A stretch of DNA of 64,000 nt from Mytilus californianus. Taxonomy: Eukaryota. A program made the position numbers and the translations under genes. This document shows, piece by piece, positions 12,740-37,960 of the stretch. The stretch is taken from assembly GCF_021869535.1 (NCBI RefSeq), contig NW_026262690.1:52886001-52950000 (forward strand), written 5' to 3'. The notes beneath the pieces were generated by a model. It did not search any database. It had not been told where the DNA came from and was given only the letters and a program-made list of their open reading frames with translations. The first letter of the stretch is position 1, and each line of letters begins with the position of its first letter.

Positions 12740-13090
12740 TAAGATAAGGTATGATTGCCAATGAGACAACTGTCCATCAGAGTTCATATGAAGTTGGTGT
12801 AAGCCATTAAAGACAACCGTACGGCCTTCAGCAAGAGAAAAACCTATATCGTATAGTCGGCTATAAAAGCCTCCGACATGAAAATTGTGAAACAATTCAA
12901 ACGAGAAAACCAACGGTCTAAATTATAAAAAAACGATTTACAAAAAAAAAAAAAAAAATATGACAGACATGAAGTAACTACAACCATTGAATTCAAGGCT
13001 CCTAACTTGGGTCAGGCACATACAGATTGTGGCGGGGTTAAACATGTATTTCAGCGCTTAACCCTCCCTAAACTGGGACAATTGTACAAA
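12740..13090 (-). mobile_element. Abundant short interspersed (SINE-like) repeat, copy 1
   Basis: GGTATGATTGCCAATGAGACAACT..CCGTACGGCCTTCA..TATAAAAGCC..AAACAATTCAAACGAGAAAA..GGCTCCTAACTTGGGTCAGGC..GGCGGGGTTAAACATG. Related pieces occur at ~26335-26520, 28100-28240, 31225-31489, 38335-38520, 40085-40225, 43125-43533, 43590-43645 and 60370-60665. Confidence 0.75.
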
Positions 13091-13817
13091 CCGTAAGAAG
13101 AGACAGAAAGAACATTACCGTCTAAAAAGGGTTAACAATGGGGAACGAAAAATCGTCTCTTTTGTCGTAAAATTTTATAGAGAATTTCCTGTGTGAAAAT
13201 TAAAATATCCAAATCTCGAAAAGGACAATTATTGCTGTCTGTATTATATCTATTTAAAGTCAGTTCCTTCCTTCAATGTGACGGTAAGTGTTTTTGAATT
13301 TATCATTTAAATGTAATTTAGACGGATCTTTACTGAGTTTGGCCATAGACTGTGATTCATAACAGTATAGAAACAAGTATACATGTACTATTAAAGGGGC
13401 GCAATTGGTGCCCATAGGAATACCTACAACTTTTGATAAACTTTATTGCCGAAACTTACATAAATGTTGTCAAGAAGAAAACTTAAAGCTTTAATCATCT
13501 AATCACAGTTCCAGTAGGTATATCTAGCATATTTCCCTTTAACATTACAGAAGAAGGCTGAATTATAGACCTCCTTAACAAAGAATTGTCCAGTGTTTGA
13601 GTTAGAGCTAGTAGACCTTTCTATATGGATATAATGTGTCCCAAAACTAGTACACTACACTGTAAAAATCTTTTGGAGATTGAGCATGAGCGATTAGTTT
13701 AATGGAATTTACTTTCTACAAAAAATCACTACTGTTTTTATTAGAATTCTTCAACTGCTTTACCTATTGTCTATTCATTCCTTAATTATGATCCCAATAC
13801 AAAGCTTTCACTTTCGG

Positions 13818-16050
13818 CCTCTTATAACATGAACAAAACCGAAATGGGTAGGATTCAATATGTAGGGCAAACTGGACGTGATTTTTTCATACGAACACAA
13901 GACCATCTATACCGCTTCCGCAGACCTAAGAAATTCAAAAGTTTAATTTACCTATATTTAAAAAAACACAAACACAATATCAAATTTATAAAATTCCGAC
14001 CACTTCAAACCGCCAAGAAACAACCAGGACAACAACATAATCAATTTGAAAATTCCTGTAAAATTTGCGAACTGTCTTGGATTAAACGACTACTGACAGC
14101 GTATCCCCATGTCGAAATGACAATATCATGGGCCAACGGAACATATCTAAAACTTCTTCTATTGATATCATGAATATTGCTGATAAAAGACAACGTAATA
14201 ATAGGTCTCATGGCAAACGTATCAATCAAAATCAACGAATTAAACATATAATAAATTAAAAACTTGACGATCTCCTATCTATATTCAAAAATAATGATAG
14301 ACATCAATTATTATGTAAACTGGCTCAAATACCAATAGTAAATTACACGATATTTTCAAGGAGTGTGACCCAATCTCGTTTTTCAGCACACTATATAAAT
14401 GTACCGTATAATTAAAGCTTTTTGTCGCCATAGGCTGTTACCGTGTATCAATAAACCTGAAGATCATAAAGGGCATTTTCTGAAAATTAAATATATTAAC
14501 AGAGGTAATGATTTTATCAACTTATCTAGAATATATAATGACTGGTCCATAATGACTCTACCACTCAAAACTTTATACCTCCCTACTTTGATAACACAGA
14601 ACCACATATATACATAAAAAAAACCCAACCAAAGTTCAATTTTTAATTATACGTCCGTAACATCAGATGTCAGTGTAGAAATAATACTTCTCTAACTTGA
14701 GACTGTGAATCGTCGAATTTTAGATATGGTCCCTATGGCAATGTTATTACGGGGGACCTCAATATCGTTTCAAGACCGAGAGGTCAAAAACTTTTTGAAA
14801 AAGGACCAAAATATCGTCCTCCATCTAAAATAGATTAGAAACAGTGTCGTCAGGTCATAAAAACACCCTTTCACCGTATTGTAAAAAAATGGTGTAAACG
14901 GGAAAAATCTGATAAAAAAAATCTCTTGATTTTTATCTAAATAAATGTATGAATGTAGTAAATGTTCGAATATCACATTTTGAAAATAATTTAGAAATAA
15001 ATAAAAGAGTACATAATACGCATATTTCTAGAATAAGAAACATCTTCAAGTACTCGCAAAGCAGCCAACAATATGGTGGTGGTATGACGTAATTACTACA
15101 CGAAGTTCTTAAGAATGAAAATAAATTCTTCTGCATTCAGGTCCGTGCGCTCCACAGAGAGTCATATAGTTAACAATCATATCATAACCACATCACAGCT
15201 TAATGCCCCTTCTGAGCATTTGAAGGTCCCTACTATGTATTGGTTACCTTTACTACACAAAAAACCTGTAAAATATCGTTTTATCTCTGCCTCTAGTAAG
15301 TGTTCTTAAACTTATCTTTCAGTGCTTTTAACTAGTTTCTAAACTACTATCAAAGAACTTATCATTAACTTTTGTAATAAAACATAGGCAAAAAATAGAA
15401 TTAACTATTTTTGGAGTGTAAATTTTTTTTGGATGTTTAAGATAAATTACGTGCCTTTGATGGTCCTTTTGATTCTGTTGACAGTTTTGATTTTTCAACT
15501 CTTTACGCTACACTTCCACACAATATAATCAAACAAAAGTTTTCCTATTTAATGGTCATTTGAAATATTCGTTTGCAAATATGTTCGTGCAACTCATTTA
15601 AACCATTCCTCTCTAAAGAGAAAGGTAAATATGCTTTATATACTTACTGGAGGTGTGATGAGATGATTGAAGCTGTCAATTTTCTCCTTGACAACATTTA
15701 CGTACGTTTCGGAAATAAAGTGTATCGACAGGATGTATGTATTCCTATGGGTACCAATTACACCCTTTAATAGCAGACTTGTTATTGTACTGTTATTAAT
15801 CACTGTTTATAGCCAAACTCAGTAAAGACCCATCTAAATTGCATTGAATTGATAAGTTCGACAACACTCAACGTTATCTTGATGATATTTTTCGTTAAAT
15901 AATGAAGAATTTTCTAAATATACTGCCGAAATTTACCCAAAGAAACTTACTTTAAATAAATCAAACATAAACGGTAATAACTGTCCTTTTCTATATTCAG
16001 ATATTTCAGTTTTACACGGGAAACGCTAGACAAAAATTTACAACAAGATC
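13818..16050 (+). mobile_element. Degenerate Naiad-type Penelope-like retroelement (second family; N-terminal GIY-YIG + RT)
   Basis: Frameshifted remnants in order: LIT(TGA)TKP..IQYVGQTGR..RTQDHLYRF..ELSWIKRL; [11 protein letters not shown]; AANNMVVV(TGA)RNYY; KVPTMYWLPLLHKKPVKYRFISAS; DFSTLY; FLLDNIYVRFG..IPMGTN; RYLDDIF; EIYPKELTLNK. Confidence 0.85.
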
Positions 16051-18714: not shown

Positions 18715-21436
18715 TGAAACTCTGACTTCAGATAGCTGTCAATATGGGGGGAAAATATTCCAAACGGATATATTTAGAGATTTAGATTGTGTTCGATATT
18801 TGAAAAAAGTTTACATAGCACCTAAAGAAATACAAAAATCTGCAAGAATTGCAAATATTTAACAAACTCAAATTCTCAAACAGAATGATTTTTTTTTTTT
18901 TTTTTTTCTCTCTCAACATTGTCTGTTGAAGAGAGAGAGAGGGGATAGCAGGGGTGTAATCCCGAACTTCCTGAAAAAGTGCTGAATACCGAAATCCCGA
19001 AAAAAATAAAGCATTCTTTCCCGAATCCCGAAAAAATTAATCAATGATTCCCGAGTTCCAATAATTGAAAATCCCGAATTTCCACAAAAATAAAGGCCCA
19101 ACCCGACGTCCCGAAAAGCTCTATTTTAGAGTTCAGTTCATTTGAATTTTCAGTAATCAAAATAAAAAAAATATACTTTACACAAATTCGTCTTCAGACA
19201 CATAAATTGAAAAAGGTTTCTGGATTTTGATAGAAAACAGCCAATGAAATACATAAATATCTTGTGTCATGGGTCACGCTCGGACTGTCTTACTTAGTAG
19301 GGATGCTTATGCGGCACATTAAAGATAGAATTTATTTTTAACTAGACATCTACCCATTATACATTAGAATGTACCACAGAATTTGAATGCACTTGATTAC
19401 ATTGACCTCTTATCTTGTCGACTTTGAAGCCCATCAGACAGCTGGCTTAAATCCACGGAAAAGACTTTAATAAAATTTGTAATATCAATAACTCTTTAAT
19501 TTTCACGGGAACGAAGATTTTGCAAGTACGCAGTAGTGATTAGATCACCAATGAAGTAATTTTAAAAATTAGACGCCAAGGCCGAAACTAGCTCTATCTC
19601 ATAATAAAGTAATGTAAACCGTCTTGAAGCAAGAAGGTCTCCTCATGTATCCGAAGTTTTGTTTGTGGACAGATGATGCTGGTGGATAAAGTCGCACCGA
19701 CTTTATGCAATGTAGGGTCTACAGAGAAATGACGATCTAAGGGTTTGAGGTATGTATTATTTGAATTAAAATATTATCTATGTAGAATATTTGCTGTCAT
19801 TTCAACTTTATTCAAACTCACTTATGTATATTTTATTTTTTTTTTATATTTTTTTCCACTTCCCCTCCTGAAATTAACTATTCTTTTAAGAATTTAGAAC
19901 CAATAAAAATATTTTAAAAACGTGACAAACTATTGTAAAAAAAAATATATACTTTGCACTGTTCTGTTGTTCTATCAACAATTTATTCCCGGGTCGTCAT
20001 ATTTTAGCCATGATTTGGAAGGACTCTGAAAGAAAAGAGATTATGAAATGTCCATCTACCGAGTGCAGAAAAACCTCCACCAAATTTAATAAAATATGCA
20101 AATTGCTAGATACAATATTTGGTTTCTTTCCAATTCTAGCATTTTCGTTGTGTTAGAGATAAATTTAATAATATATTTTGCAAGAAATTAAAATTCATTT
20201 TTTTAGGGTGAGGAAGATGTCATTTCTCCTTTACTGCACAAACCACCACTGTACTGGGGAGATTGACCTGTTAGTTATTGTTGATAGGTGTCAACGTTTA
20301 TGAATCGACATGTCCAACACTTGCAAGAGTAATTACGGCAGTGTTTGTGAAACTAATTTCATCTTTTGTGAAAAATCATCATTCGCTGCTGTCCGATAAT
20401 TCAATCTTAAAGTGATTTACAGCAAAATTAATGCACAGAGAGGAGAAGCATATCCTGTATTTCGGAACAGAAAGGAGCTTAGAACATTTCCTGAATAAGT
20501 GATAATTTTTAAAGCCCGTGATATACATGTGTACATCAAATTAATTTGATTATAAAAATAGAAAATTGTGCACTCAGAATTGTGCATAGCAGAAAGTGAT
20601 GATATCAAAACTTTTCATTGTTTAAAGACAAATTTTCTAATGGTATGAAATCGGAAAGCGGCATTGGCGATAACTTGAAATATAAATTCAGATTTTGTAT
20701 CTTCTTCAAGAGCAATTTCAATGTATATTTGAATAATATCAACGATTAATTTATGTAGAAAATACACAAATGAAAGAATTTGGCTAATGTAATAATTCTG
20801 TTTTAAGTTGTTTTCTATTGCAAATTGTTTTTCCACGAAAAAATAGTTTTGGAAAGGCGAAATCTTCAAAATTTTTCTAGGAATTCAGTATTTTTGTGAT
20901 TTATCTTTCTACTACATAATCACATTGTGTAATCTTAATTCAAAATAAAGTTGAAATTGACAAGTAAGCTTTGCAAACACGGTAATGATGTTGGGTGTAA
21001 TGCCATGAGGTATTCAGGTAATTTAAATTTTTAAACTTGTCCTCTCCGCCGCTCCACTAATGTCAGTTGGGTTATGGTGTCGTTGATTTGCTGTCATTGG
21101 CGTATGTTTTCCAAATGCTTTATATAGCAATAATTATTGTATGGATTTATAAGCTTCAAGACGAATTGGAAAACATAACTAGAGACTCTAAATAGCCTAT
21201 GTCGCTCACCCAGGTTTTTGTGCATTTTAGACAATGGACGCTCTTCAAGATTGTAGAATAGAACTTAATTCATGGACTTTATCTTTATTGTTGATCTTGT
21301 TTTGCACATGATATTTTCTGTCTACAGTTTCTCTCTATCTTCTAGTTTTCCCCAAAACACAAAGAATTGTAAAATTCGTCACATAAAGACAATGACTCAT
21401 ATAAGAAGAAAAATGAGAATTTCATCTATGCTGATA

Positions 21437-22292
21437 ATAAAATTGAGAATGGAAACGGGGAAAGTGTCAAAGAGACAACAACCCGACCAAAGAGCAGAAA
21501 ACAGCCCAAGGCCACCAATGGGTCTTCAACACAGCGAGAAAATCCCGCACCCGGAGGTGGGTTTCAGCTGGCCCTAAACAAAAATGTGTACCAGTTCAGT
21601 GAAAATGGACGACACACTAAACTCCGAAACAACAAAAATTAAAAAACATACAAGACTAACAAAGGCCAGAGGTTCCTGACTTGGGACAGGCGCAAATATG
21701 CGGCGGGGTTAAACATGTTTTGTGAGATCTCTACCCTCCCCCTATACCTTTAGCCAATGTAGAATAAACAAACACATGGCAATACGCACAGTAACACTCA
21801 GTTTAAAGGAAGTCCGAGTTCGATATTAGTATAGGTAACAGAAGAAACTAAGCAAAATGACAATGATAACATAAATTAACAAAGGACTACTTTAATGTAG
21901 CAGTTACTGATATGCCAGCTCAAAACCTCAGTTAAACTGATTGAAAGATTGTCTTTATCATATGAAAATTAAGCACAATCCCTCCCGTTAGGGGTTTAGT
22001 ATCATTCCATCATAAAATATATGAGAAGAACATAACCCGTATCATGCCAACAACTTGTTTTAGAGTAAATGTGTTTATTTCCGATGCAAAGACCTTACAT
22101 GTATGAGTGAATCAATATTAATTCAAAAAAATGCCATCTTTAATGATCTGACAACAGTATCGTAACTATATCCCTTCTGAATAAGTCAGTTTAAAGGTTT
22201 GGTTAGATTTTGAGGTGAATGACGACATTTTTGTGCTTTGTATATAATATTACCGTAAAAGATTGGATGTGAAATACTTGAACGTATAAGAT
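21437..22292 (-). mobile_element. Older 5'-truncated Naiad 3' fragment, split by the younger insertion (continues at 25865-25962)
   Basis: Homologous to 22293-23250 (3' UTR, SECIS, ORF end) but diverged. The intact counterpart is 37007-37960. Confidence 0.9.
21958..22024 (-). promoter_or_regulatory. SECIS homolog in the older Naiad fragment (3' quartet mutated TGA->TAA)
   Basis: ATGAtggaatgatactAAAcccctaacgggagggattgtgctTAA: same fold, with the quartet broken. Confidence 0.65.
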
Positions 22293-22814
22293 AAAATTGA
22301 GAATGGAAATGGGGAATGTGTCAAAGAGACAACAACCCGACCATAGAACAGACACCAGCAGAAGGTCACCAACAGGTCTTCAATGCAGCGAGAAATTCCC
22401 GCACCCGGAGGCGTCCTTCAGCTGGCCCCTAAACAAATATATATACTAGTTCAGTGATAATGAACGTCATACTAAACTCCAAATTGTACACAAGAAACTA
22501 AAATTAAAAATAATACAACACTGACAAAGGCTAGAGGCTCCTGACTTGGGACAGGCGCAAAAATGCGGCGGGGTTAAACATGTTTATGAGATCTCAACCC
22601 TCCCCCTATACCTCTAGCCAATGTAGAAAAGTAAACGCATAACAATACGTACGTTAAAATTCAGTTCAAGAGAAGTCCGAGTCTGATGTCAGAAGATGTA
22701 ACCGAAGAAAATAAACAAAATGACAATAATACATAAATAACAACAGACTACTAGCAGTTAACTGACATGCCAGCTCCAGACTTCAATTAAACTGATTGAA
22801 AGATTATGTCTTCA

Positions 22815-22881
22815 TCATATGAATATCAGGCACAATCCTTCCCGTAAGGGGTTTAGTATCATACCATCATAACATATATGA
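22815..22881 (-). promoter_or_regulatory. SECIS element (type II-like) in the Naiad 3' UTR
   Basis: Minus strand: tcatatatgtt ATGA t ggtatgat act AAA ccc cttac ggg aagg attgtgcc TGA t attc atatga. It has the ATGA/TGA quartet, 12 nt from ATGA to AAA, helix II ggtatgat/attgtgcc, an apical mini-stem and helix I tcatat/atatga, and lies ~50 nt after the stop codon. Confidence 0.85.
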
Positions 22882-22931
22882 GAAGAACATAACCCGTGTC
22901 ATGCCAACAACTGGTTTTTAAATAAATGTGT

Positions 22932-25857
22932 TTAGTGCCGATGCAAAGACCCTATAAGTGAATCAATATTAACGCAAAAATATGCAATCTTTAATGACCT
23001 GACAACAGTATCGTAACTATATCCCTTCTTAATAAGTCTATTTAAAGGTTTTGTTAGCTTCAGAGGTAAATACTGACATTTTTGTGCTTTATAAAGAATA
23101 TTTCCATAAAAAATTGGATGTGAAATACCTGAACGTATAAGAAGTCTGCATGTTGAGCTATATTTACGAATGATGTCCTTATACCGATGATAACATTTAG
23201 TAAATGTTTTGACTAGTTTGTGATATCGAAAACCCTGGAGTAATAATTTTTCAGTAATACATAGATTTCTCTCGTTAAAATCTAAAAAATTGTTACATAC
23301 ACGAGCGAATCGTACAAGTTGAGATATATAAACACCGCAAGATGGTGACAAGGGAACGTCACCATCTAAAAATGGATAATTAACGATAGGAAATGAAAAA
23401 TCATCTCTTTTATCATATATTTTAGTATTAAGCTTTCCGTTAATGATATAGATATCAAGATCGAGGAAAGGGCAGTGGTCATTGTTAGTATTAGCTTTAT
23501 TTAAAGTAAGTTCAACAGGATAAATTTCTTAAGTATACATACTGAAGTCGTCATTATTGAGAGCCAAAATATCATCCAAATATCTAAAAGTATTATTAAA
23601 TTTGTGTATCAGATGTTGTTTCGATGGTTCTTTGCTGATTTTTGTCATAAATTGTAACTCATAGCAATACAAAAAAAGGTCCGCAATAAGTGGTGCACAG
23701 TTAGTCCCCATTGGAATTCCGATAACCTGACGATATACGGAATCTCCAAATCGAACAAAAATGTTATCTAGTAAAAATTCAAGGGCATATATAGTATCAA
23801 AGCATGTCCAATTGACATAGTTTTTTTGTTTATTGCTACTAAAAAATGACCTAAAAGAGTTTGAACATATATATTCACATTCTGACTTTTTAAATGCCCA
23901 TTTAATTAGGTGTGTGAATTTTTTCTTAATGAGAATGTGAGGCAATGTGGTATATAGGGTAGAAAAATCAAAACTTTGAACAGATTCAAAATCACCAATA
24001 TATGCATGCAATTTATCAAGCACTTCCAACGAGTTCTTGACACTCCAAAAGTAATTATTTCCACTATTTTCGAAGGCCTTATTTGAACAATTTATTATCA
24101 GGTTTTTGATTGTACCAAGTGTACTGGTAAGAAGAATAGACAATTAATAGTGGAACAATGGCTTGAAGACGAAATGAATCTATATTTGTAAGGTGTTTTG
24201 TGTAGCTTCGGAAGCCAATACATAGTTGGGACTTTCATTGTATTTGGTTCTGCTTGTAAAGCGGTAGCTAAAAGTTTATGTTTGTTACAGATGTCGTTTT
24301 CTGAAAATGGAGTCAGTTGGAATGTTGGTGTATTAGTGATTTCTTTTTTCAGAACCTCAATGTCAAATTTACGTCAAACAATAATAATATTATTAGCAGC
24401 TTTATCGGCCGGGACAAAAACAAATTCCTTGGCTAGTTCTTTTAGTTTATGTTTGATACGAGAAATAGGTTTATTGTGGTTATTGTTAAGAGTAAAATGT
24501 TCTTTAAAATGTTGAATACGTATATCAACTATGTTCATTACTGATTTAAAAAAAGAGTCCAAAGATTTTTTGTCAGCTTTTTCCCGTTTTATCCATTTCA
24601 AACAGTAAGTATGGAGTGAGTCGTGGATGATATCACGACACTCATTCCAATTAATAATTGACGGGGGACGATATTTAGGTCCTTTACTGAGGAATGATTT
24701 TAACTCTCGGTCTTGAACGATGTTAAGATCTCCTGTTATAACATGGGAAATGGGTCCATAAATGTATTCGGAATTACTGCAATTACATGAAGTAGGTGTA
24801 TTTTCACTGATATTAACATCTTTACACAATTGGCTATAATTAAACACAAATTTCCGGGTAGATTTCTTGTAAATATAACAAATAAGAGGGAGCTCAGTAT
24901 TATCAAAATATCCCGGAATTTGTTCTTTAACAGGATGGTCGTTAAAAATACCGGTAATATTTACAAAATCAAAACCTTTATTGACATACTTTATTTTAAT
25001 AAACTGTTTTTTATGATCTTCAGGGCGATCAATTTTGGGAAACAGTTTAGAATAACAATATGCCATTATAATTTGAACGATTTCATACTTAGGACTGCTA
25101 TATGAAATTGTGTTGCAATCCTCTAAAATTTTATTTAACTTATTAACCGGTAATGAACAGAGCTTTGTTAACAGATAATGTCTGCCGTTGTTTTTTGAAA
25201 TAGAAATTAGGTCCGAAATATTGGTATGATTGGTCCGAAATTTTCTTTGATTGCGATTTTTTCTACGACCATGAGAACGGTTTTTACGAACAGTTTTAGA
25301 ACCTATATCCAAAATGATAACAGAATCGGTTCTTGATATATTACCAATTCCCATGATATTATCATTAAGACCGAGAGGGTAGACTGTCTGTAATTTTTTA
25401 ATCCAATTTAATTCAATTATTTTCCGCGATCGTACAAACTTTGAATGAGATTCACCAGGCTGCTTATTTACTACTTCTAAAGGTTGAACTGCTAAATATT
25501 TAATAGGATGATTGTGCTTCTTAAGGTGTTGATAAATGATACTTTTGAATTTATTGGGTCTTTTAAAACGATACAGATGTTCCTGAGTGCGTTTAGATAA
25601 ATATCGTCCAGTTTCACCTACGTACTGAATACCGCATCCCGGTTTGTTTCATGTGAGTAAATAAATTATACTGTTTGTTTTTCAAGTTATATCAGTTTCA
25701 AAATTTAAAGAAAATGTGCGACCATTAAACGTGGACCTTACCGTATTGTTGGTGGAAAGACGGGGACATGTAAGTCATTTTTTGGCATGACACTTATCGA
25801 TAGAAGGGTAACCACGATTTTTATTGTTAAAAATGTTAGCGATGGTAGTATTTTTAG
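22932..25857 (-). pseudogene. Naiad EN-RT polyprotein (~975 codons) with four in-frame TGA (putative Sec), one frameshift (~24145) and one TAA (23529-23531)
   Basis: ..KCHAKK*LTCP..DIT*KTNSIIYLLT*NKPGCGIQYVGETGRYLSKRTQEH..YQH..IELNWIKKLQTVYPLGLND (GIY-YIG, CCHH-type); ..VPADKAANNIIIV*RKF..PTMYWLPKLHK..DFSTLYT..GIPMGTNCAP..RYLDD..FLDLDI..IYDKRDDF..GVYISQLVRFAR (RT). TGA positions: 25775-77, 25682-84, 25649-51, 24374-76. Confidence 0.9.
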
Positions 25858-28800
25858 ATAAGATGTCTATTTACGAATAAATGTCCTTATACCGATGATA
25901 AAATTAAGTAAATGTTTTGACAAGTTTGTGATATCGAAAACCCTGGTGTAATAATTTTTTACCTGTTTGCAGATTTTGCTTTGCTGATCATTTTAGCTTT
26001 TTAAAGTTTCTATTTATCTACTATAGTTTTCAAACTAATAGGCAAAGTTTTTAACACGTAAAATGGTAAGAATTGTCATTTAACGGCAACGAAGAGTTGA
26101 ATGACGATTTCAGCAATATTGACTTATATGTATAGATCTTGTCTTGCTAATCACTTTTGCTATTTATAGTTTCTATAATTTTCAAAATAATTGGCAAAAA
26201 CGCAAAAAATTGGTAAAAATCGTCATTAAAGGACAATAACTCCAATAAAGAGTCAACTAACAATTCTTGACTTATTTGTAGATCTTGTTTTATGACAATT
26301 TTTGCCATTTAATATTTCTATCTATCTTTTATTGGTCACCGTACGGTCTTCAACAATAAACAAAACACATACCATATAGCATGATATACAAGGCCCCTAT
26401 ATGAGAAATGTAAAAACAATTCAAACAAGAAAACAAACGGCCTCATTTATGTAAAAACAATAGACAAAAACAAGTTTGCTATACAGTAACAAACACCAAC
26501 AACTAAATAACAGGCTCCAAAATATAAAAATCAGTTGAAAAGGATCGATACAAATCACACAAACGGTAGTATTTATTCTTCCATAGGCGACAATACTAAC
26601 ATTTTCTAAATTTTACTACTTTTGATAATAAAAACCTGGAAAAAACAGTTTTGTATACTTTATTACTCTGTTTTAGAAATTGAAGTCAAATAGTATCATA
26701 ACCATCTTCCAACGGAGCTTAAATTGTTTGTGGTATCCATGCCAACCGTCATTTTACATCAAATTTATGAAAGTTTGGAAGTCTCTTCGAATAATTCTCA
26801 AGAAAATATTTCTAAGGGTTTCAAAATTTATATTGTGAATATACACACTGTAGTTATTCATGAATAAAAAAATATATATATTATACCCTTACACCAAATC
26901 ACAGCGCTCCTAAGTTGACTTCCTTCGCCTGCCTTGGATACACAAAAGGCCAACTTAAAGCTGGGAAAATGTATCTTACTTTTTTCCCTAAAAGATAGTT
27001 AAAATCCAATAAAAACTCATAAAAACATCATGTATCCAAGACTAAAATATCAATCAGTACACAACCAATGGATTTAGTGTAAACACGTCATAAACCGGCA
27101 GAGAAAAACATGATCTTGTGCAATGCGAAAATATAAGTATCGACAAAGGACCGTAAATATCCATAGGTGTAAAGCAATAACATTTAGTATTTATTTATTT
27201 ATTGCTAACAAAACCAATGTTTGTACATATAAAAAACGATATTCACAAATGTTCTTACAGTGTTAAATTGACAACCTTAAAGTGCCAAAACGAGTTAGAT
27301 TATCTTGGCAAAATATCGATCTGAATGTTTAGGTTTCTACGTCACCATATATGACTAAGACATCAGCAAAATCAACGTCTGCAAAAGAACCATGATATAT
27401 TACATTCAAATATTTTCTACTAGTACTTTGTTAGTTCGGTATGTTCTAACTGCTATTTATCATTTAATTTAGTTATTTTATTTTATTTGTTTACACTTAA
27501 CGCATTGGTACTTTCCAACAAGCATGTACCGAATATTGATTAACACTCTTTGAGTCTATGCTAGAAGTTGTAATTCAAAATGCATGCAGTTTGTCAGTGC
27601 ATTGTTGAAGATATTCAATCGACTGTCGTGACGGATAGTAGCAAGAAAGGCTGTTCTATTGATATGTTACTGTTTTGGTACTGTATAGGTATTTTGAAAA
27701 GGTTGACTTGTATGTTAGAGCCTAGGCGGTTTTGATATTAATGATATTTAAGCTCTGACACAATACCAAAATGGGTCTTTTTCTGTAATATTCTGATATT
27801 TCTGTTTAACCATGATTCAGTTAGTGTAGAATCTAACACGATACGAATTGTATAATTTCATTTTCTTATGCATAGTTAAGGACTTTCCACAAATTATTTA
27901 CATTCTTAATTCACTTCTTGCTTTACTTGTTTTGCAATTTTGGCTTTGCCTCTAGAAACTTTATGTCAAATGAAATAATCATGTCAATAAAGGAGGTAAT
28001 GATATTAATTTGCCTGTTTTGTCAGATCTTTTATTTAAGTAAATTTAGTCGGCATCAAAATTATTGTTAATTGTTAATATCTTAGATGTAACATTTTCCA
28101 AAATAAGCGGACTATGTGGTATGGGTTTTGCTCATTGTTGAAGGCCGTACGGTGACCTATAGCTGATAATTTCTGTGTCATTTGGTCTCTTGTGGGGAGT
28201 TGTCTCATTGGCAATCATACCATATCTTCTTATTTTTATAGTAGTCTACCCCTTTTTAGATTTTTATTTTTAGACTTGATCTTAAGTTACCTTATATCCG
28301 ACATTTTTATAGATGTTCTATCTATGTTGATGTTGGCAATACTGTTTGTCGGATTGGGACACGGGATATAAGTTTGAATAAAAACACTGGTATCTTATGG
28401 ATTGATTAATCATTTTTTAAATGGGTTTCAGCTGTTTTCAAAAACTAAAGTACAGAGTTTGATGACCAAAAAACCGAAAAACGGCAGTTTTGTAACACTG
28501 GATGTTTAAGTCGAGGAGCTACAAAAATTCAGATTTTACAGAAATATTGGTTGTAAAGCTAATCAAATTTAAATTTTTTTTTCCTACTAGTTAATAGGGC
28601 GATGTTTTAATTTTTTGAATAGTGTTGTCTATACAACATTGTTGTTTTATTAGCAAATTAGATATATGCAAACATAAAAGTACAAATGTATAAGAACACA
28701 CGTAAATATCACAAAAGGATCCAAAATTGTATTTTCAATTATGATTTCTCGAATTCTTGTTCTACGAATTTTCTTAAATTATGATATGTTAATGCGCTCA

Positions 28801-34289: not shown

Positions 34290-37006
34290 TGAAACTCTGA
34301 CTTCAAATAGCTGTCAATATGGGGGAAAAATATTCTTAACGGATATATTTAGAGATTTAGATTGTGTTCGATATTTGAAAAAAGTTTACATAGCACCTAA
34401 AGAAATACAAAAATCTGCAAGAATTGCAAATATTGAACAAACTCAAATTCTCAAACAGAATGATTTTTTTTGGATTTTTTTCTCTCTCAACATTGTCTGT
34501 TGAAGAGAGAGAGATGGGATAGGAGGGGTGTAATCCCGAACTTCATGAAAAAGTGCTGAATACCGAAATCCCAAAAAAAATAAAGCATTCTTTCCCGAAT
34601 CCCGAAAAATTAATCAATGATTCCCGAGTTCCAATAATTGAAAATCCCGAATTTCCGCAAAAATAAAGGCCCAACCCGACGTCCCGAAAAGCTCTATTTT
34701 AGAGTTCAGTTTATTTGAATTTTCAGTAATCAAAATAAAAAAAAAATATTTTACACAAATTCGTCTTCAGACACATAAATTGAAAAAGGTTTCTGGATTT
34801 TGATAGAAAACAGCCAATGAAATGCATAAATATCTTGTGTCATGGGTCACGCACGAACTGTCTTACTTAATAGGGATGCTTATGCGGCACATTAAAGATC
34901 AAATTTATTTTTAACTAGACATCTACCCATTATACATTAGAATGTACCACAGAACTTGAATGCACTTGATTACATTGACCTCTTATCTTGTCGACTTTGA
35001 AGCCCATCAGACAGCTGGCTTAAATCCACGGAAAAGACTTTAATAAAATTTGTAATATCAATAACTCTTTAATTTTCACGGGAACGAAGATTTTGCAAGT
35101 ACGCAGTAGTGATTAGATCACCAATAAGAAATTTTAAAAATTAGACGCCAAGGCCGAAACTAGCTCTATCTCATAATAAAGTAATGTAAACCGTCTTGAA
35201 GCAAGAAGGTCTCCTCATGTAACCGAAGTTTTGTTTGTAGACAGATGATGCTGGTGGATAAAGTCGCACCGACTTTATGCAATGTAGGGTCTACAGAGAA
35301 ATGACGATCTAAGGGTTTGAGGTATGTATTATTTGAATAAAAATATTATCTATGTAGAATATTTGCTGTCATTTCAACTTTATTCAAACTCACTTAATAT
35401 GTATATTTTATTTTTTTTTATATTTTTTTCCACTTCCCCTCCTGAAATTAACTATTCTTTTAAGAATTTAGAACTAATAAAAATATTTTAAAAACGTGAC
35501 AAACTATTGTAAAAAAAATATACTTTGCAGTGTTCTGTTGTTCTATCAACAATTTATTCCCGGGTCGTCATATTTTAGCCATGATTTGGAAGGACTCTGA
35601 AAGAAAAGAGATTATGAAATGTCCATCTACCGAGTGCAGAAAAACCTCCACCAAATTTAATAAAATATGCAAATTGCTAGATACAATATTTGGTTTCTTT
35701 CCAATTCTAGCATTTTCGTTGTGTTAGAGATAAATTTAATGATATATTTTGCAAGAAATTAAAATTCATATTTTTAGGGTGAAGAAGATGTCATTTCTCC
35801 TTTATTGCACAAACCACCACTATACTGGAGAGATTGACCTGTTAGTTATTGCTGATAGGTGTCAACGTTTATGAATCGACATGTCCAACACTTGCAAGAG
35901 TAATTACGGCAGTGTTTGTGAAACTAATTTCATCTTTTGTGAAAAATCATCATTCGCTGCTGTCCGATAATTCAATCTTAAAGTGATTTACAGCAAAATT
36001 AATGCACATAGAGGAGAAGCATATCCTGTATTTCGGAACAGAAAGGAGCTTAGAACATTTCCTGAATAAGTGATAATTTTTAAAGCCCGTGATATACATG
36101 TGTACATCAAATTAATTTGATTATAAAAATAGAAAATTGTGCACCTAGAATTGTGCATAGCAGATAGTGATGATATCAGAACTTTTCATTGTTTAAAGAC
36201 AAATTTTCTAATGGTATGAAATCGGAAAGCGGCATTGGCGATAACTTGAAATATAAATTCAGATTTTGTATCTTCTTCAAGAGCAATTTCAATGTATATT
36301 TGAGTAATATCAACGATTAATTTATGTAGAAAATACACAAATGAAAGAATTTGGCTAATGTAATAATTTTGTTTTAAGTTGTTTTCTATTGCAAATTGTT
36401 TTTCCACGAAAAAATAGTTTTGGAAAGGCGAAATCTTCAAAATTTTTCTAGGAATTCAGTATTTTTGTGATTTATCTTTCTACTACATAATCACATTGTG
36501 TAATCTTAATTCAAAATAAAGTTGAAATTGACAAGTAAGCTTTGCAACCACGGTAATGATGTTGGGTGTAATGCCATGAGGTATTCAGGTAATTTAAATT
36601 TTTAAACTTGTCCTCTCCGCCGCTCCACTAATGTCAGTTGTGTTATGGTGTCGTTGATTTGCTGTCATTGGCGTATGTTTTCCAAATGCTTTATATAGCA
36701 ATAATTATTGTATGGATTTATAAGCTTCAAGACGAAGTGGAAAACATAACTAGAGACTCTAAATAGCCTATGTCGCTCACCCAGGTTTTTGTGCATTTTA
36801 GACAATGGACGCTCTTCAAGATTGTAGAATAGAACTTAATTCATGGACTTTATCTTTATTGTTGATCTTGTTTTGCACATGATATTTTCTGTCTACAGTT
36901 TCTCTCTATCTTTTAGTTTTCCCAAAACACAAAGAATTGTAAAATTCGTCACATAAAGACAATGACTCATATAAGAAGAAAAATGAGAATTTCATCTATG
37001 CTGATA

Positions 37007-37960
37007 ATAAAATTGAGAATGGAAACGGGGAAAGTGTCAAAGAGACAACAACCCGACCAAAGAGCAGAAAACAGCCCAATGCCACCAATGGGTCTTCAAC
37101 ACAGCGAGAAAATCCCGCACCCGGAGGCGGGTTTCAGCTGGCCCCTAAACAAAAAGGTGTACTAGTTCAGTGAAAACGGACGACACACTAAACTCCGAAA
37201 CATCAAAATTAAAAAACATACAAGACTAACAAAGGCCAGAGGTTCCTGACTTGGGACAGGCGCAAATATGCGGCGGGGTTAAACATGTTTTGTGAGATCT
37301 CTACCCTCCCCCTATACCTTTAGCCAATGTAGAATAAACAAACACATGGCAATACGCACAGTAACACTCAGTTTAAAGGAAGTCCGAGTTCGATATTAGT
37401 TTAGGTAACAGAAGAAACTAAGCAAAATAACAATGATAACATAAATTAACAAAGGACTACTATAATGTAGCAGTTACTGATATGCCAGCTCCAAACCTCA
37501 GTTAAACTGATTGAAAGATTGTCTTTATCATATGAAAATCAAGCACAATCCCTCCCGTTAGGGGCTTAGTATCATTCCATCATAAAATATATGAGAAGAA
37601 CATAACCCGTATCATGCCAACAACTTGTTTTAGAGTAAATGTGTTTATTTCCGATGCAAAGACCTTACATGTATGAGTGAATCAATATTAATTCAAAAAA
37701 ATGCCATCTTTAATGATCTGACAACAGTATCGTAACTATATCCCTTCTGAATAAGTCAGTTTAAAGGTTTGGTTAGATTTTGAGGTGAATGACGACATTT
37801 TTGTGCTTTGTATATAATATTACCATAAAAGATTGGATGTGAAATACTTGAACGTATAAGATGTCTATTTACGAATAAATGTCCTTATACCGATGATAAA
37901 ATTAAGTAAATGTTTTGACAAGTTTGTGATATCGAAAACCCTGGTGTAATAATTTTTTAC
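37007..37960 (-). mobile_element. Uninterrupted older Naiad 3' fragment (empty-site allele)
   Basis: Contiguous ..AACGTATAAGATGTCTATTT.. at ~37851-37870, with a single ATAAGAT where unit 1 carries the 3,572-bp insertion. Confidence 0.9.
37528..37594 (-). promoter_or_regulatory. SECIS homolog in the older Naiad fragment, unit 2 (quartet intact, apical AAG)
   Basis: ATGAtggaatgatactAAGcccctaacgggagggattgtgctTGA. Confidence 0.7.

Follow-up and report, generated by a model that had tools for sequence, protein, structure and literature searches.

Selenoprotein-coding transposons are known from four families only (Craig et al. 2021, PMC8557442). All four are Naiads, a type of Penelope-like element (PLE): Naiad_Mmer and Naiad_Scon from the clams Mercenaria mercenaria and Sinonovacula constricta, and Naiad_Sdum and Naiad_Smim from Stegodyphus spiders, each carrying a selenocysteine insertion sequence (SECIS) just after its stop codon. 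The same paper predicted that more Naiads coding for selenocysteine (Sec) would be found in bivalves, and mussels are mentioned in it only for a Mytilus Naiad with 3,782 3' ends that was not flagged as Sec; no report of a mussel Sec-Naiad was found in the literature searched. Here we analyse 64,000 nt of Mytilus californianus DNA (assembly GCF_021869535.1, NW_026262690.1:52,886,001-52,950,000, forward strand), hereafter the window, whose positions serve as element coordinates. Within it lies a copy, now dead, of a Naiad-type Penelope-like retrotransposon that has been active recently; the copy is truncated at its 5' end and has a single frameshift and a private TAA. The open reading frame (ORF) of the family is interrupted by four in-frame TGA codons, designated U1 to U4 in order of translation, and the corresponding UGA codons are most likely decoded as selenocysteine (predicted) in an endonuclease-reverse transcriptase (RT) protein, in place of invariant cysteines.

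Sec coding by Naiads has been described before, in clams and spiders; what is new here is a mussel family with a later fourth Sec. A previous inspection of the window made from its letters alone (the sequence-only reading) had proposed that the family uses Sec in its endonuclease region and in the N-terminus of its RT, and had cited the description of Sec-recoding Naiads with SECIS elements by Craig et al. 2021, with which the content of that paper agrees (PMC8557442).

The four TGA codons lie on invariant cysteine positions of a Naiad-type protein

The intact ORF of the family displays, in this order, a C-x4-C-x2-C knuckle, GIY...YIG enclosing a Cys pair, a KR-rich block, CxC, GPKY, DKA and the RT motifs down to YLDD, with GIY and YIG at residues ~90-110 and the RT motifs (FDFSTLY, PMGTNCAP, YLDD) at ~655-790. 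The linker between both parts holds RKNRSHGRRKNRNQRKFR (the KR-rich block), SCNCS and GPKY, again in that order, and linker motifs of this kind (KR-rich, CxC, GxKF/Y) are listed as Naiad-diagnostic (Craig et al. 2021, PMC8557442). Pfam searches with four pieces of the element itself (424 aa from between U3 and U4, 480 aa from the RT and two of 30 aa) returned no meaningful family, so that domain identity rests on the motifs and on the Pfam matches of homologues with cysteine codons at the TGA positions (Cys-type homologues), in which an N-terminal GIY-YIG domain (PF01541) scored 32.9 and 32.6 bits and RVT_1 matched weakly towards the C-terminus. No hammerhead ribozyme was present among the Rfam matches, either at E<=10 on window positions 21500-26500 or at E<=1 on a full-length copy. 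Judged by these motifs, the element is a Naiad-type PLE, with an N-terminal GIY-YIG endonuclease, a KR/CxC/GPKY linker and a C-terminal RT in a single ORF.

Retranslation of the minus strand in the frame set by 24374 reproduced the positions (Table 1) and contexts that the sequence-only reading had given for the four TGA codons: KCHAKK-TGA-LTC (U1), DIT-TGA-KT (U2), IIYLLT-TGA-NKPGC (U3) and DKAANNIIIV-TGA-RK (U4). With the 424-aa U3-U4 piece as query, an exhaustive HMMER search retrieved 2672 relatives, and an alignment with 52 full-length homologues (>=800 aa) was used to assign each codon to a column. As had been supposed, the TGA codons align with conserved cysteines, all four columns being 100% Cys in the Cys-type homologues. 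Only 9 of the 1002 ORF positions are columns with >=90% Cys in this alignment and all four TGA are among these nine, an outcome whose probability under random placement is ~6.5e-9. The C-x4-U-x2-C and U-x4-C arrangements of the mussel protein align with C...CxxC and CxxC of the homologues, the assignment of the latter to a CCHH motif resting on its Cys residues, and the CxC columns of the linker are 98-100% Cys. One Cys-type Naiad from the same genome, 39% identical to the window family, has an open 998-aa frame with Cys at all four columns.

Comparison with described Naiads and with selenoprotein P

Compared by the paper's description, the mussel family shares with Naiad_Mmer and Naiad_Scon the architecture, a bivalve host, a high copy number, UGA at the same three Cys as U2, U3 and U4 (before GIY-YIG, first of CCHH and 8 aa after DKA) and, just after a non-UGA stop, a SECIS that in the mussel is a putative one. 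It differs from them in three respects. Its host is a mussel, outside the Sec cases listed in the paper, instead of a clam; its fourth UGA is found in the upstream zinc knuckle, on the second Cys, and that of Naiad_Scon on an unconstrained RT6 residue; and its SECIS-like element has a mini-stem according to the Rfam alignment (type II-like), while those in the paper are type I. The spider elements Naiad_Sdum and Naiad_Smim, with three or four Sec per protein, have UGA in a CX2-5CxxC zinc-finger-like motif, before GIY-YIG and after DKA, as in the mussel family. However, they lack Sec at the CCHH Cys and are said to have arisen independently, whereas the mussel family combines the clam-type trio with a zinc-knuckle Sec. 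The comparison suggests that the latter is convergent with the spider elements.

Bivalve Cys-type Naiads, including those of the same genome, have the same domain order, the same motifs (KR-rich, CxC, GxKY, DKA), tandem or partial-tandem insertions and 5' truncation, but carry TGT or TGC at all four columns, need no SECIS and are 26-39% identical to the window family at the amino acid level. Open Cys-type frames of ~998 aa were located at G000:C46:18078142-18080916 and in ~45 other places, and the search yielded 74,626 first-look candidates; Naiads as a whole are very abundant in the host genome.

As regards host genes, bivalve selenoprotein P is described as having many UGA that are processively decoded as Sec (Baclaocos et al. 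2019, as cited in PMC8557442). On that second-hand account, the likeness is that multiple UGA in one bivalve message are readable, and the difference is that selenoprotein P is a host gene with dedicated SECIS elements and not a mobile element.

The TGA codons are fixed in a young and abundant family

A DNA search of the 1.65-Gb host genome gave 4466 first-look candidates, of which 40 were scored and nearly all were 98-99% identical. Besides the window copy, 29 copies were fetched and compared, using a full-length copy as coordinate ruler and per-column codon tallies in place of a consensus. In these 29 copies the family unit measures ~4020-4048 bp, with a constant 3' end and variable 5' ends, and head-to-tail tandems with a 4020-bp period and upstream partial copies were frequent. 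Genome-wide counts of exact words fell from 3959 in the SECIS region (near-identical SECIS copies) to 1026 in the U4 region and 456 in the U1 region, which is the 5'-truncation gradient expected of target-primed reverse transcription.

The intact family ORF comprises 1002 codons. In 25 of the 29 other copies the four TGA are the only interruptions from the ATG to the TAA, and each of the remaining 4 has private damage of its own; all four TGA are nevertheless carried by 29/29. Conversely, the absent start of the window copy, its frameshift (~24143) and its TAA (23529-31) are private damage, the last two being found in 0/29 of the other copies. The TGA codons are thus fixed across copies and the other stops copy-specific. 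U1 and U4 were also tallied genome-wide, U2 and U3 being tallied in the 30 fetched copies only: U4 was TGA in 100/100 sites listed, of 1026 in all, and the 100 U1 sites listed (of 456) comprised 92 TGA, 5 TTA, 2 TAA and 1 TGC. Examples of the U1 TTA sites are C57:11180333, C57:11780409, C57:26194092, C24:31696692 and C86:10367882; such recurrence points to a sub-lineage or to duplicated segments more than to independent changes. The family is young (copies ~99% alike) and abundant (~4,000 3' ends), and its RNA is present in libraries.

Diverged relatives retain the same TGA columns

Many of the top database matches ended exactly at query residue 424, that is, at U4. Gene callers split Sec-type ORFs at each UGA, leaving database halves of 325-420 aa and 475-484 aa that end or start at U4, and such elements are consequently mis-annotated as fragments. 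The contigs behind four of the top HMMER matches that stop at U4 were examined as relatives (L031-L035). The closest, L033 (~60% identity to the window family), has TGA at all four columns. The others keep TGA at U2, U3 and U4 and have a cysteine codon at U1: TGT in L031/L032 (42-55% identity) and L035 (39-53%), and TGC in L034 (43-48%). L033 and L035 have one frameshift each; the ORFs of the relatives are otherwise open, with no TAA or TAG at the four columns and no other in-frame TGA before the ORF end.

Between the window family and the relatives, the ratio of nonsynonymous to synonymous substitution rates (dN/dS) in segments downstream of the TGA codons was 0.14-0.37 where computable, a rough bound since dS was too saturated for many pairs, and amino acid identity after U4 was 48-63%. 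These low ratios, together with the saturation of dS, indicate that the sequence after the TGA codons has been translated and selected throughout. In a maximum-likelihood tree of rows chosen from the search hits, in which TGA columns were scored as gaps, all five rows of the Sec type formed one clade (Shimodaira-Hasegawa-like approximate likelihood ratio test, SH-aLRT, 100) nested among Cys-type Naiads, within which the window family paired with L033 (SH-aLRT 99). Since U1 is TGA only in these two, it appears to be a later addition to the older trio U2-U4. This distribution suggests that three Sec sites were inherited from an old Sec-Naiad clade and that the zinc-knuckle Sec was gained on the branch leading to the window family and L033.

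These data bear on the idea that the TGA codons are ordinary stops in a non-autonomous or dead lineage which is copied in trans by Cys-type Naiad proteins. The genome does contain intact Cys-type ORFs (998 aa, no stops), besides tens of thousands of first-look candidates, and young copies would all inherit the TGA from a common source, so that fixation among 99%-identical copies alone proves little. However, the same TGA columns recur in five families across saturated synonymous divergence, in ORFs that are otherwise open and with dN/dS well below 1 downstream. Moreover, wherever a stop occurs at these columns across families it is TGA, with no case of TAA or TAG, and every such column is one of invariant Cys. 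Taken together, we regard ordinary stops as a very improbable explanation.

A SECIS-like element follows the stop codon

A Sec-type Naiad is expected to carry a SECIS, and a SECIS-like element was found in the 3' untranslated region (UTR), on the right strand and shortly after the ORF stop (Table 1). Rfam SECIS_1 matched it on the sense strand with 32.2 bits (E 0.0015), short of the gathering score of 35, and the region folded better than 200/200 shuffles (z-score -3.9). The family-typical version, taken from the full-length copy (L005), scored 31.7 bits, and matches were also obtained for L031/L032 (26.5 bits, overlapping the terminal TGA) and L035 (22.8 bits). A SECIS-like element thus follows the stop in 3 of the 4 families with a searchable 3'UTR (the window family and 2 of 3 relatives), which speaks against a dead lineage. 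Helix 1 differs in sequence between families yet pairs in each of them: CAUAU/AUAUG, GGGAC/GUCCU and AAGAC/GUCUU. In the metagenome contig L031 (6731-6798), the terminal TGA of the ORF doubles as the UGA within the AUGA core of the SECIS, and a TAA follows 27 nt downstream, an arrangement resembling that published for Naiad_Mmer. An older family copy flanking the window element (21436-22291) was tried as an independent SECIS witness and set aside as decayed and uninformative, its quartet GA being mutated and Rfam reporting no match.

Leaky UGA read-through is a common means by which retroelements set protein ratios, and the UGA codons could accordingly be read without Sec, either by a near-cognate tRNA giving Cys, Trp or Arg or by the Sec machinery giving Cys, UGA then serving mainly to throttle full-length output. 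The sub-threshold SECIS scores agree with such a reading, as does the strong attenuation that four UGA in one ORF would impose. Yet all of the UGA lie on invariant Cys columns of the metal-binding type and not at a domain boundary, and the SECIS shape, with AUGA, AA and GA at the right place, is accompanied by helix changes that compensate each other from one family to the next; the SECIS reported for clams and spiders, for their part, are grade A (PMC8557442). We consider read-through without Sec very unlikely, and more so in view of the host genes described below.

Host selenocysteine machinery and element RNA

The host genome contains two tRNA-Sec genes with anticodon TCA, which score 79.6 and 77 bits and exceed the cut-off, as well as a multi-exon SepSecS gene with its exons colinear on one contig. 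That the host has Sec machinery genes is a further argument for Sec over other forms of read-through. A tandem array of tRNA-like units with a 728-bp period was also noticed at G000:C154:27755505-27807263 (~50 units listed); each unit scores 42.8 bits to tRNA-Sec against a cut-off of 47, and the array is probably another tRNA type or a tRNA-derived repeat.

The share of words of the element stretch recovered was ~0.8 in runs under four organism labels and ~0.4 in six RNA runs. Raw RNA reads (organism A) covered all 30 bins of the element, the 5' coding part being ~5:1 sense-biased in one RNA run and little biased in the other. At 23531, a letter other than that of the window was found in 36/36 and 87/87 sense reads (first mate on +) and in 15/15 and 28/38 reads of the opposite direction, and an extra T behind 24143 was found in 14/19 and 29/39 reads. 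These differences indicate, from RNA, that the window TAA and frameshift are private. Among the best-supported differences listed, to which 234 further ones add, none was at 24374-76 (U4).

This last observation is relevant to the notion that the TGA codons are assembly or sequencing artefacts, or are removed by RNA editing: neighbouring private differences are listed and a change at U4 is not. Given, in addition, that independent genomic sites with TGA number in the hundreds and that contigs of unrelated public samples have it as well, we attach practically no weight to either possibility.

RNA depth was far from even at the 3' end. Over the last ~120 nt of the element (22291-22410) it reached 340-600 reads, whereas the ORF had 10-50, and many loose ends fell at 22292 and 22334-22348; this 3' end may be common to other repeats or embedded in many host transcripts.

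Weighing the selenocysteine reading

The proposal of the sequence-only reading, that the mussel family uses Sec in its endonuclease region and RT N-terminus, has gained support from the fixation of the TGA codons, their coincidence with Cys columns and the SECIS-like element. Several observations pull in the opposite direction. Every SECIS match scores under the Rfam gathering score, and in L033, the closest relative, no SECIS match was obtained at E<=1, a motif scan giving one poor GUGA candidate. The fetched copies are the best-scoring matches to the window copy and so a sample biased towards near kin, and 8 of the 100 U1 sites listed are not TGA. Four UGA per mRNA demand processive recoding, which is usually inefficient, and Cys-type Naiads with intact ORFs in the same genome could mobilise others in trans. 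RNA in libraries is presence and not proof of translation, the more so with little strand bias in one run, and Sec insertion is something we infer from nucleic acid sequence. It is on account of the sub-threshold SECIS scores and of this last point that we hold decoding as Sec to be highly probable and no more than that.

Under the mechanism that we favour, the host Sec machinery (tRNA-Sec, SECIS-binding protein and Sec elongation factor) would read the four UGA of the 1002-codon ORF as Sec, directed by the SECIS stem-loop 52 nt after the TAA stop. Sec would then replace Cys at the zinc knuckle, before GIY, at the first position of the CCHH finger and 8 residues after DKA, the trio U2-U4 having come down from the old Sec-Naiad clade and the zinc-knuckle U1 having been added later. 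Transposition would, in consequence, be dependent on selenium.

With respect to what was known, the mussel family joins the four published ones, to which it adds a later Sec at a fourth position, evidence of a single deep Sec clade, and the case of a very young, abundant family present as RNA. It could serve as a practical system to ask why a mobile element would favour Sec over Cys and whether its activity rises and falls with selenium supply. A single deep origin of the three clam-type Sec sites followed by a later fourth would, if true, offer a rare view of stepwise Cys-to-Sec evolution. In addition, with SECIS copies dispersed by the thousand, selenoprotein prediction in bivalve genomes may be led astray. 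A wider and so far rather doubtful picture can be sketched, in which Sec-Naiads form one old and diverse clade with stepwise replacement of Cys by Sec (three sites shared, the fourth gained on the mussel branch and convergent with spiders), the active family is selenium-dependent, and some of its ~4,000 spread SECIS 3' ends supply host transcripts or compete for the Sec machinery.

The window copy and its surroundings

Homology of the window copy to the family begins at 25862, so that the ATG and the first 26 codons are gone while the constant 3' end is retained. The sequence-only reading had described a frameshift at ~24145 and a TAA at 23529 as the damage to this copy. Both were recovered, the ORF fragments lying in two frames that are joined by a 1-nt deletion near 24143, behind which the rest of the protein is in another frame and meets the TAA at 23529-23531 before the terminal TAA; the 5' truncation had been missed. 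The features are collected in Table 1.

Table 1. Naiad-related features of the window and their positions.
Feature	Position	Strand	Description
U1 TGA	25775..25777	-	Second Cys of upstream C-x4-C-x2-C zinc-knuckle-like motif; Cys in 38/38 homologues
U2 TGA	25682..25684	-	Cys immediately before GIY motif; Cys in 43/43 homologues
U3 TGA	25649..25651	-	First Cys of CCHH motif inside GIY-YIG core; Cys in 44/44 homologues
U4 TGA	24374..24376	-	Cys 8 residues after DKA motif, N-terminal part of RT; Cys in 52/52 homologues
SECIS-like element, 3'UTR	22816..22880	-	AUGA, AA bulge, mini-stem, GA quartet; 52 nt after TAA stop
Young copy of the Naiad family	22291..25862	-	98.9% identity over 3573 bp to full-length genomic copies
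N-terminal endonuclease region	25358..25792	-	Zinc knuckle, GIY 25652-25672, YIG 25610-25630, through LGLNDN
Naiad linker	24662..25288	-	KR-rich block 25235-25288, CxC 24776-24790, GPKY 24662-24682
RT part	22935..24373	-	Broken by private 1-nt deletion near 24143 and private TAA 23529-23531
RT motifs	FDFSTLY 23937-23972, PMGTNCAP 23688-23720, YLDD 23565-23585	-	Motif search
Terminal ORF stop TAA	22932..22934	-	Frame translation, copy comparison
Element 3' tail downstream of SECIS	22291..22815	-	Common to all copies up to one 3' end
Older family copy, 3' part	21436..22291	-	~84% identical; insertion target of young copy; other flank 25868-25959
Old diverged Naiad fragment	13827..15992	+	65-70% nt identity; TGA at U3 (13830-13832) and U4 (15085-15087) columns

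The young copy is nested in the older one, and an older 3' fragment without insertion lies at 37006-37957, the uninterrupted counterpart of 21436-22291/25868-25959; the two look like an empty and a filled site within one window. Two parts of the old diverged Naiad (65-80% nt identity) form an inverted pair, the minus part at 12996-13480 and the plus part given in Table 1, which is typical of tandem or inverted PLE insertions. Elsewhere in the genome, 17 Myticin-prepro matches (antimicrobial peptide genes), a sign that the host is a Mytilus-type mussel, were recorded, with a cluster of at least 12 on one contig (G000:C101:1697753-1973863).

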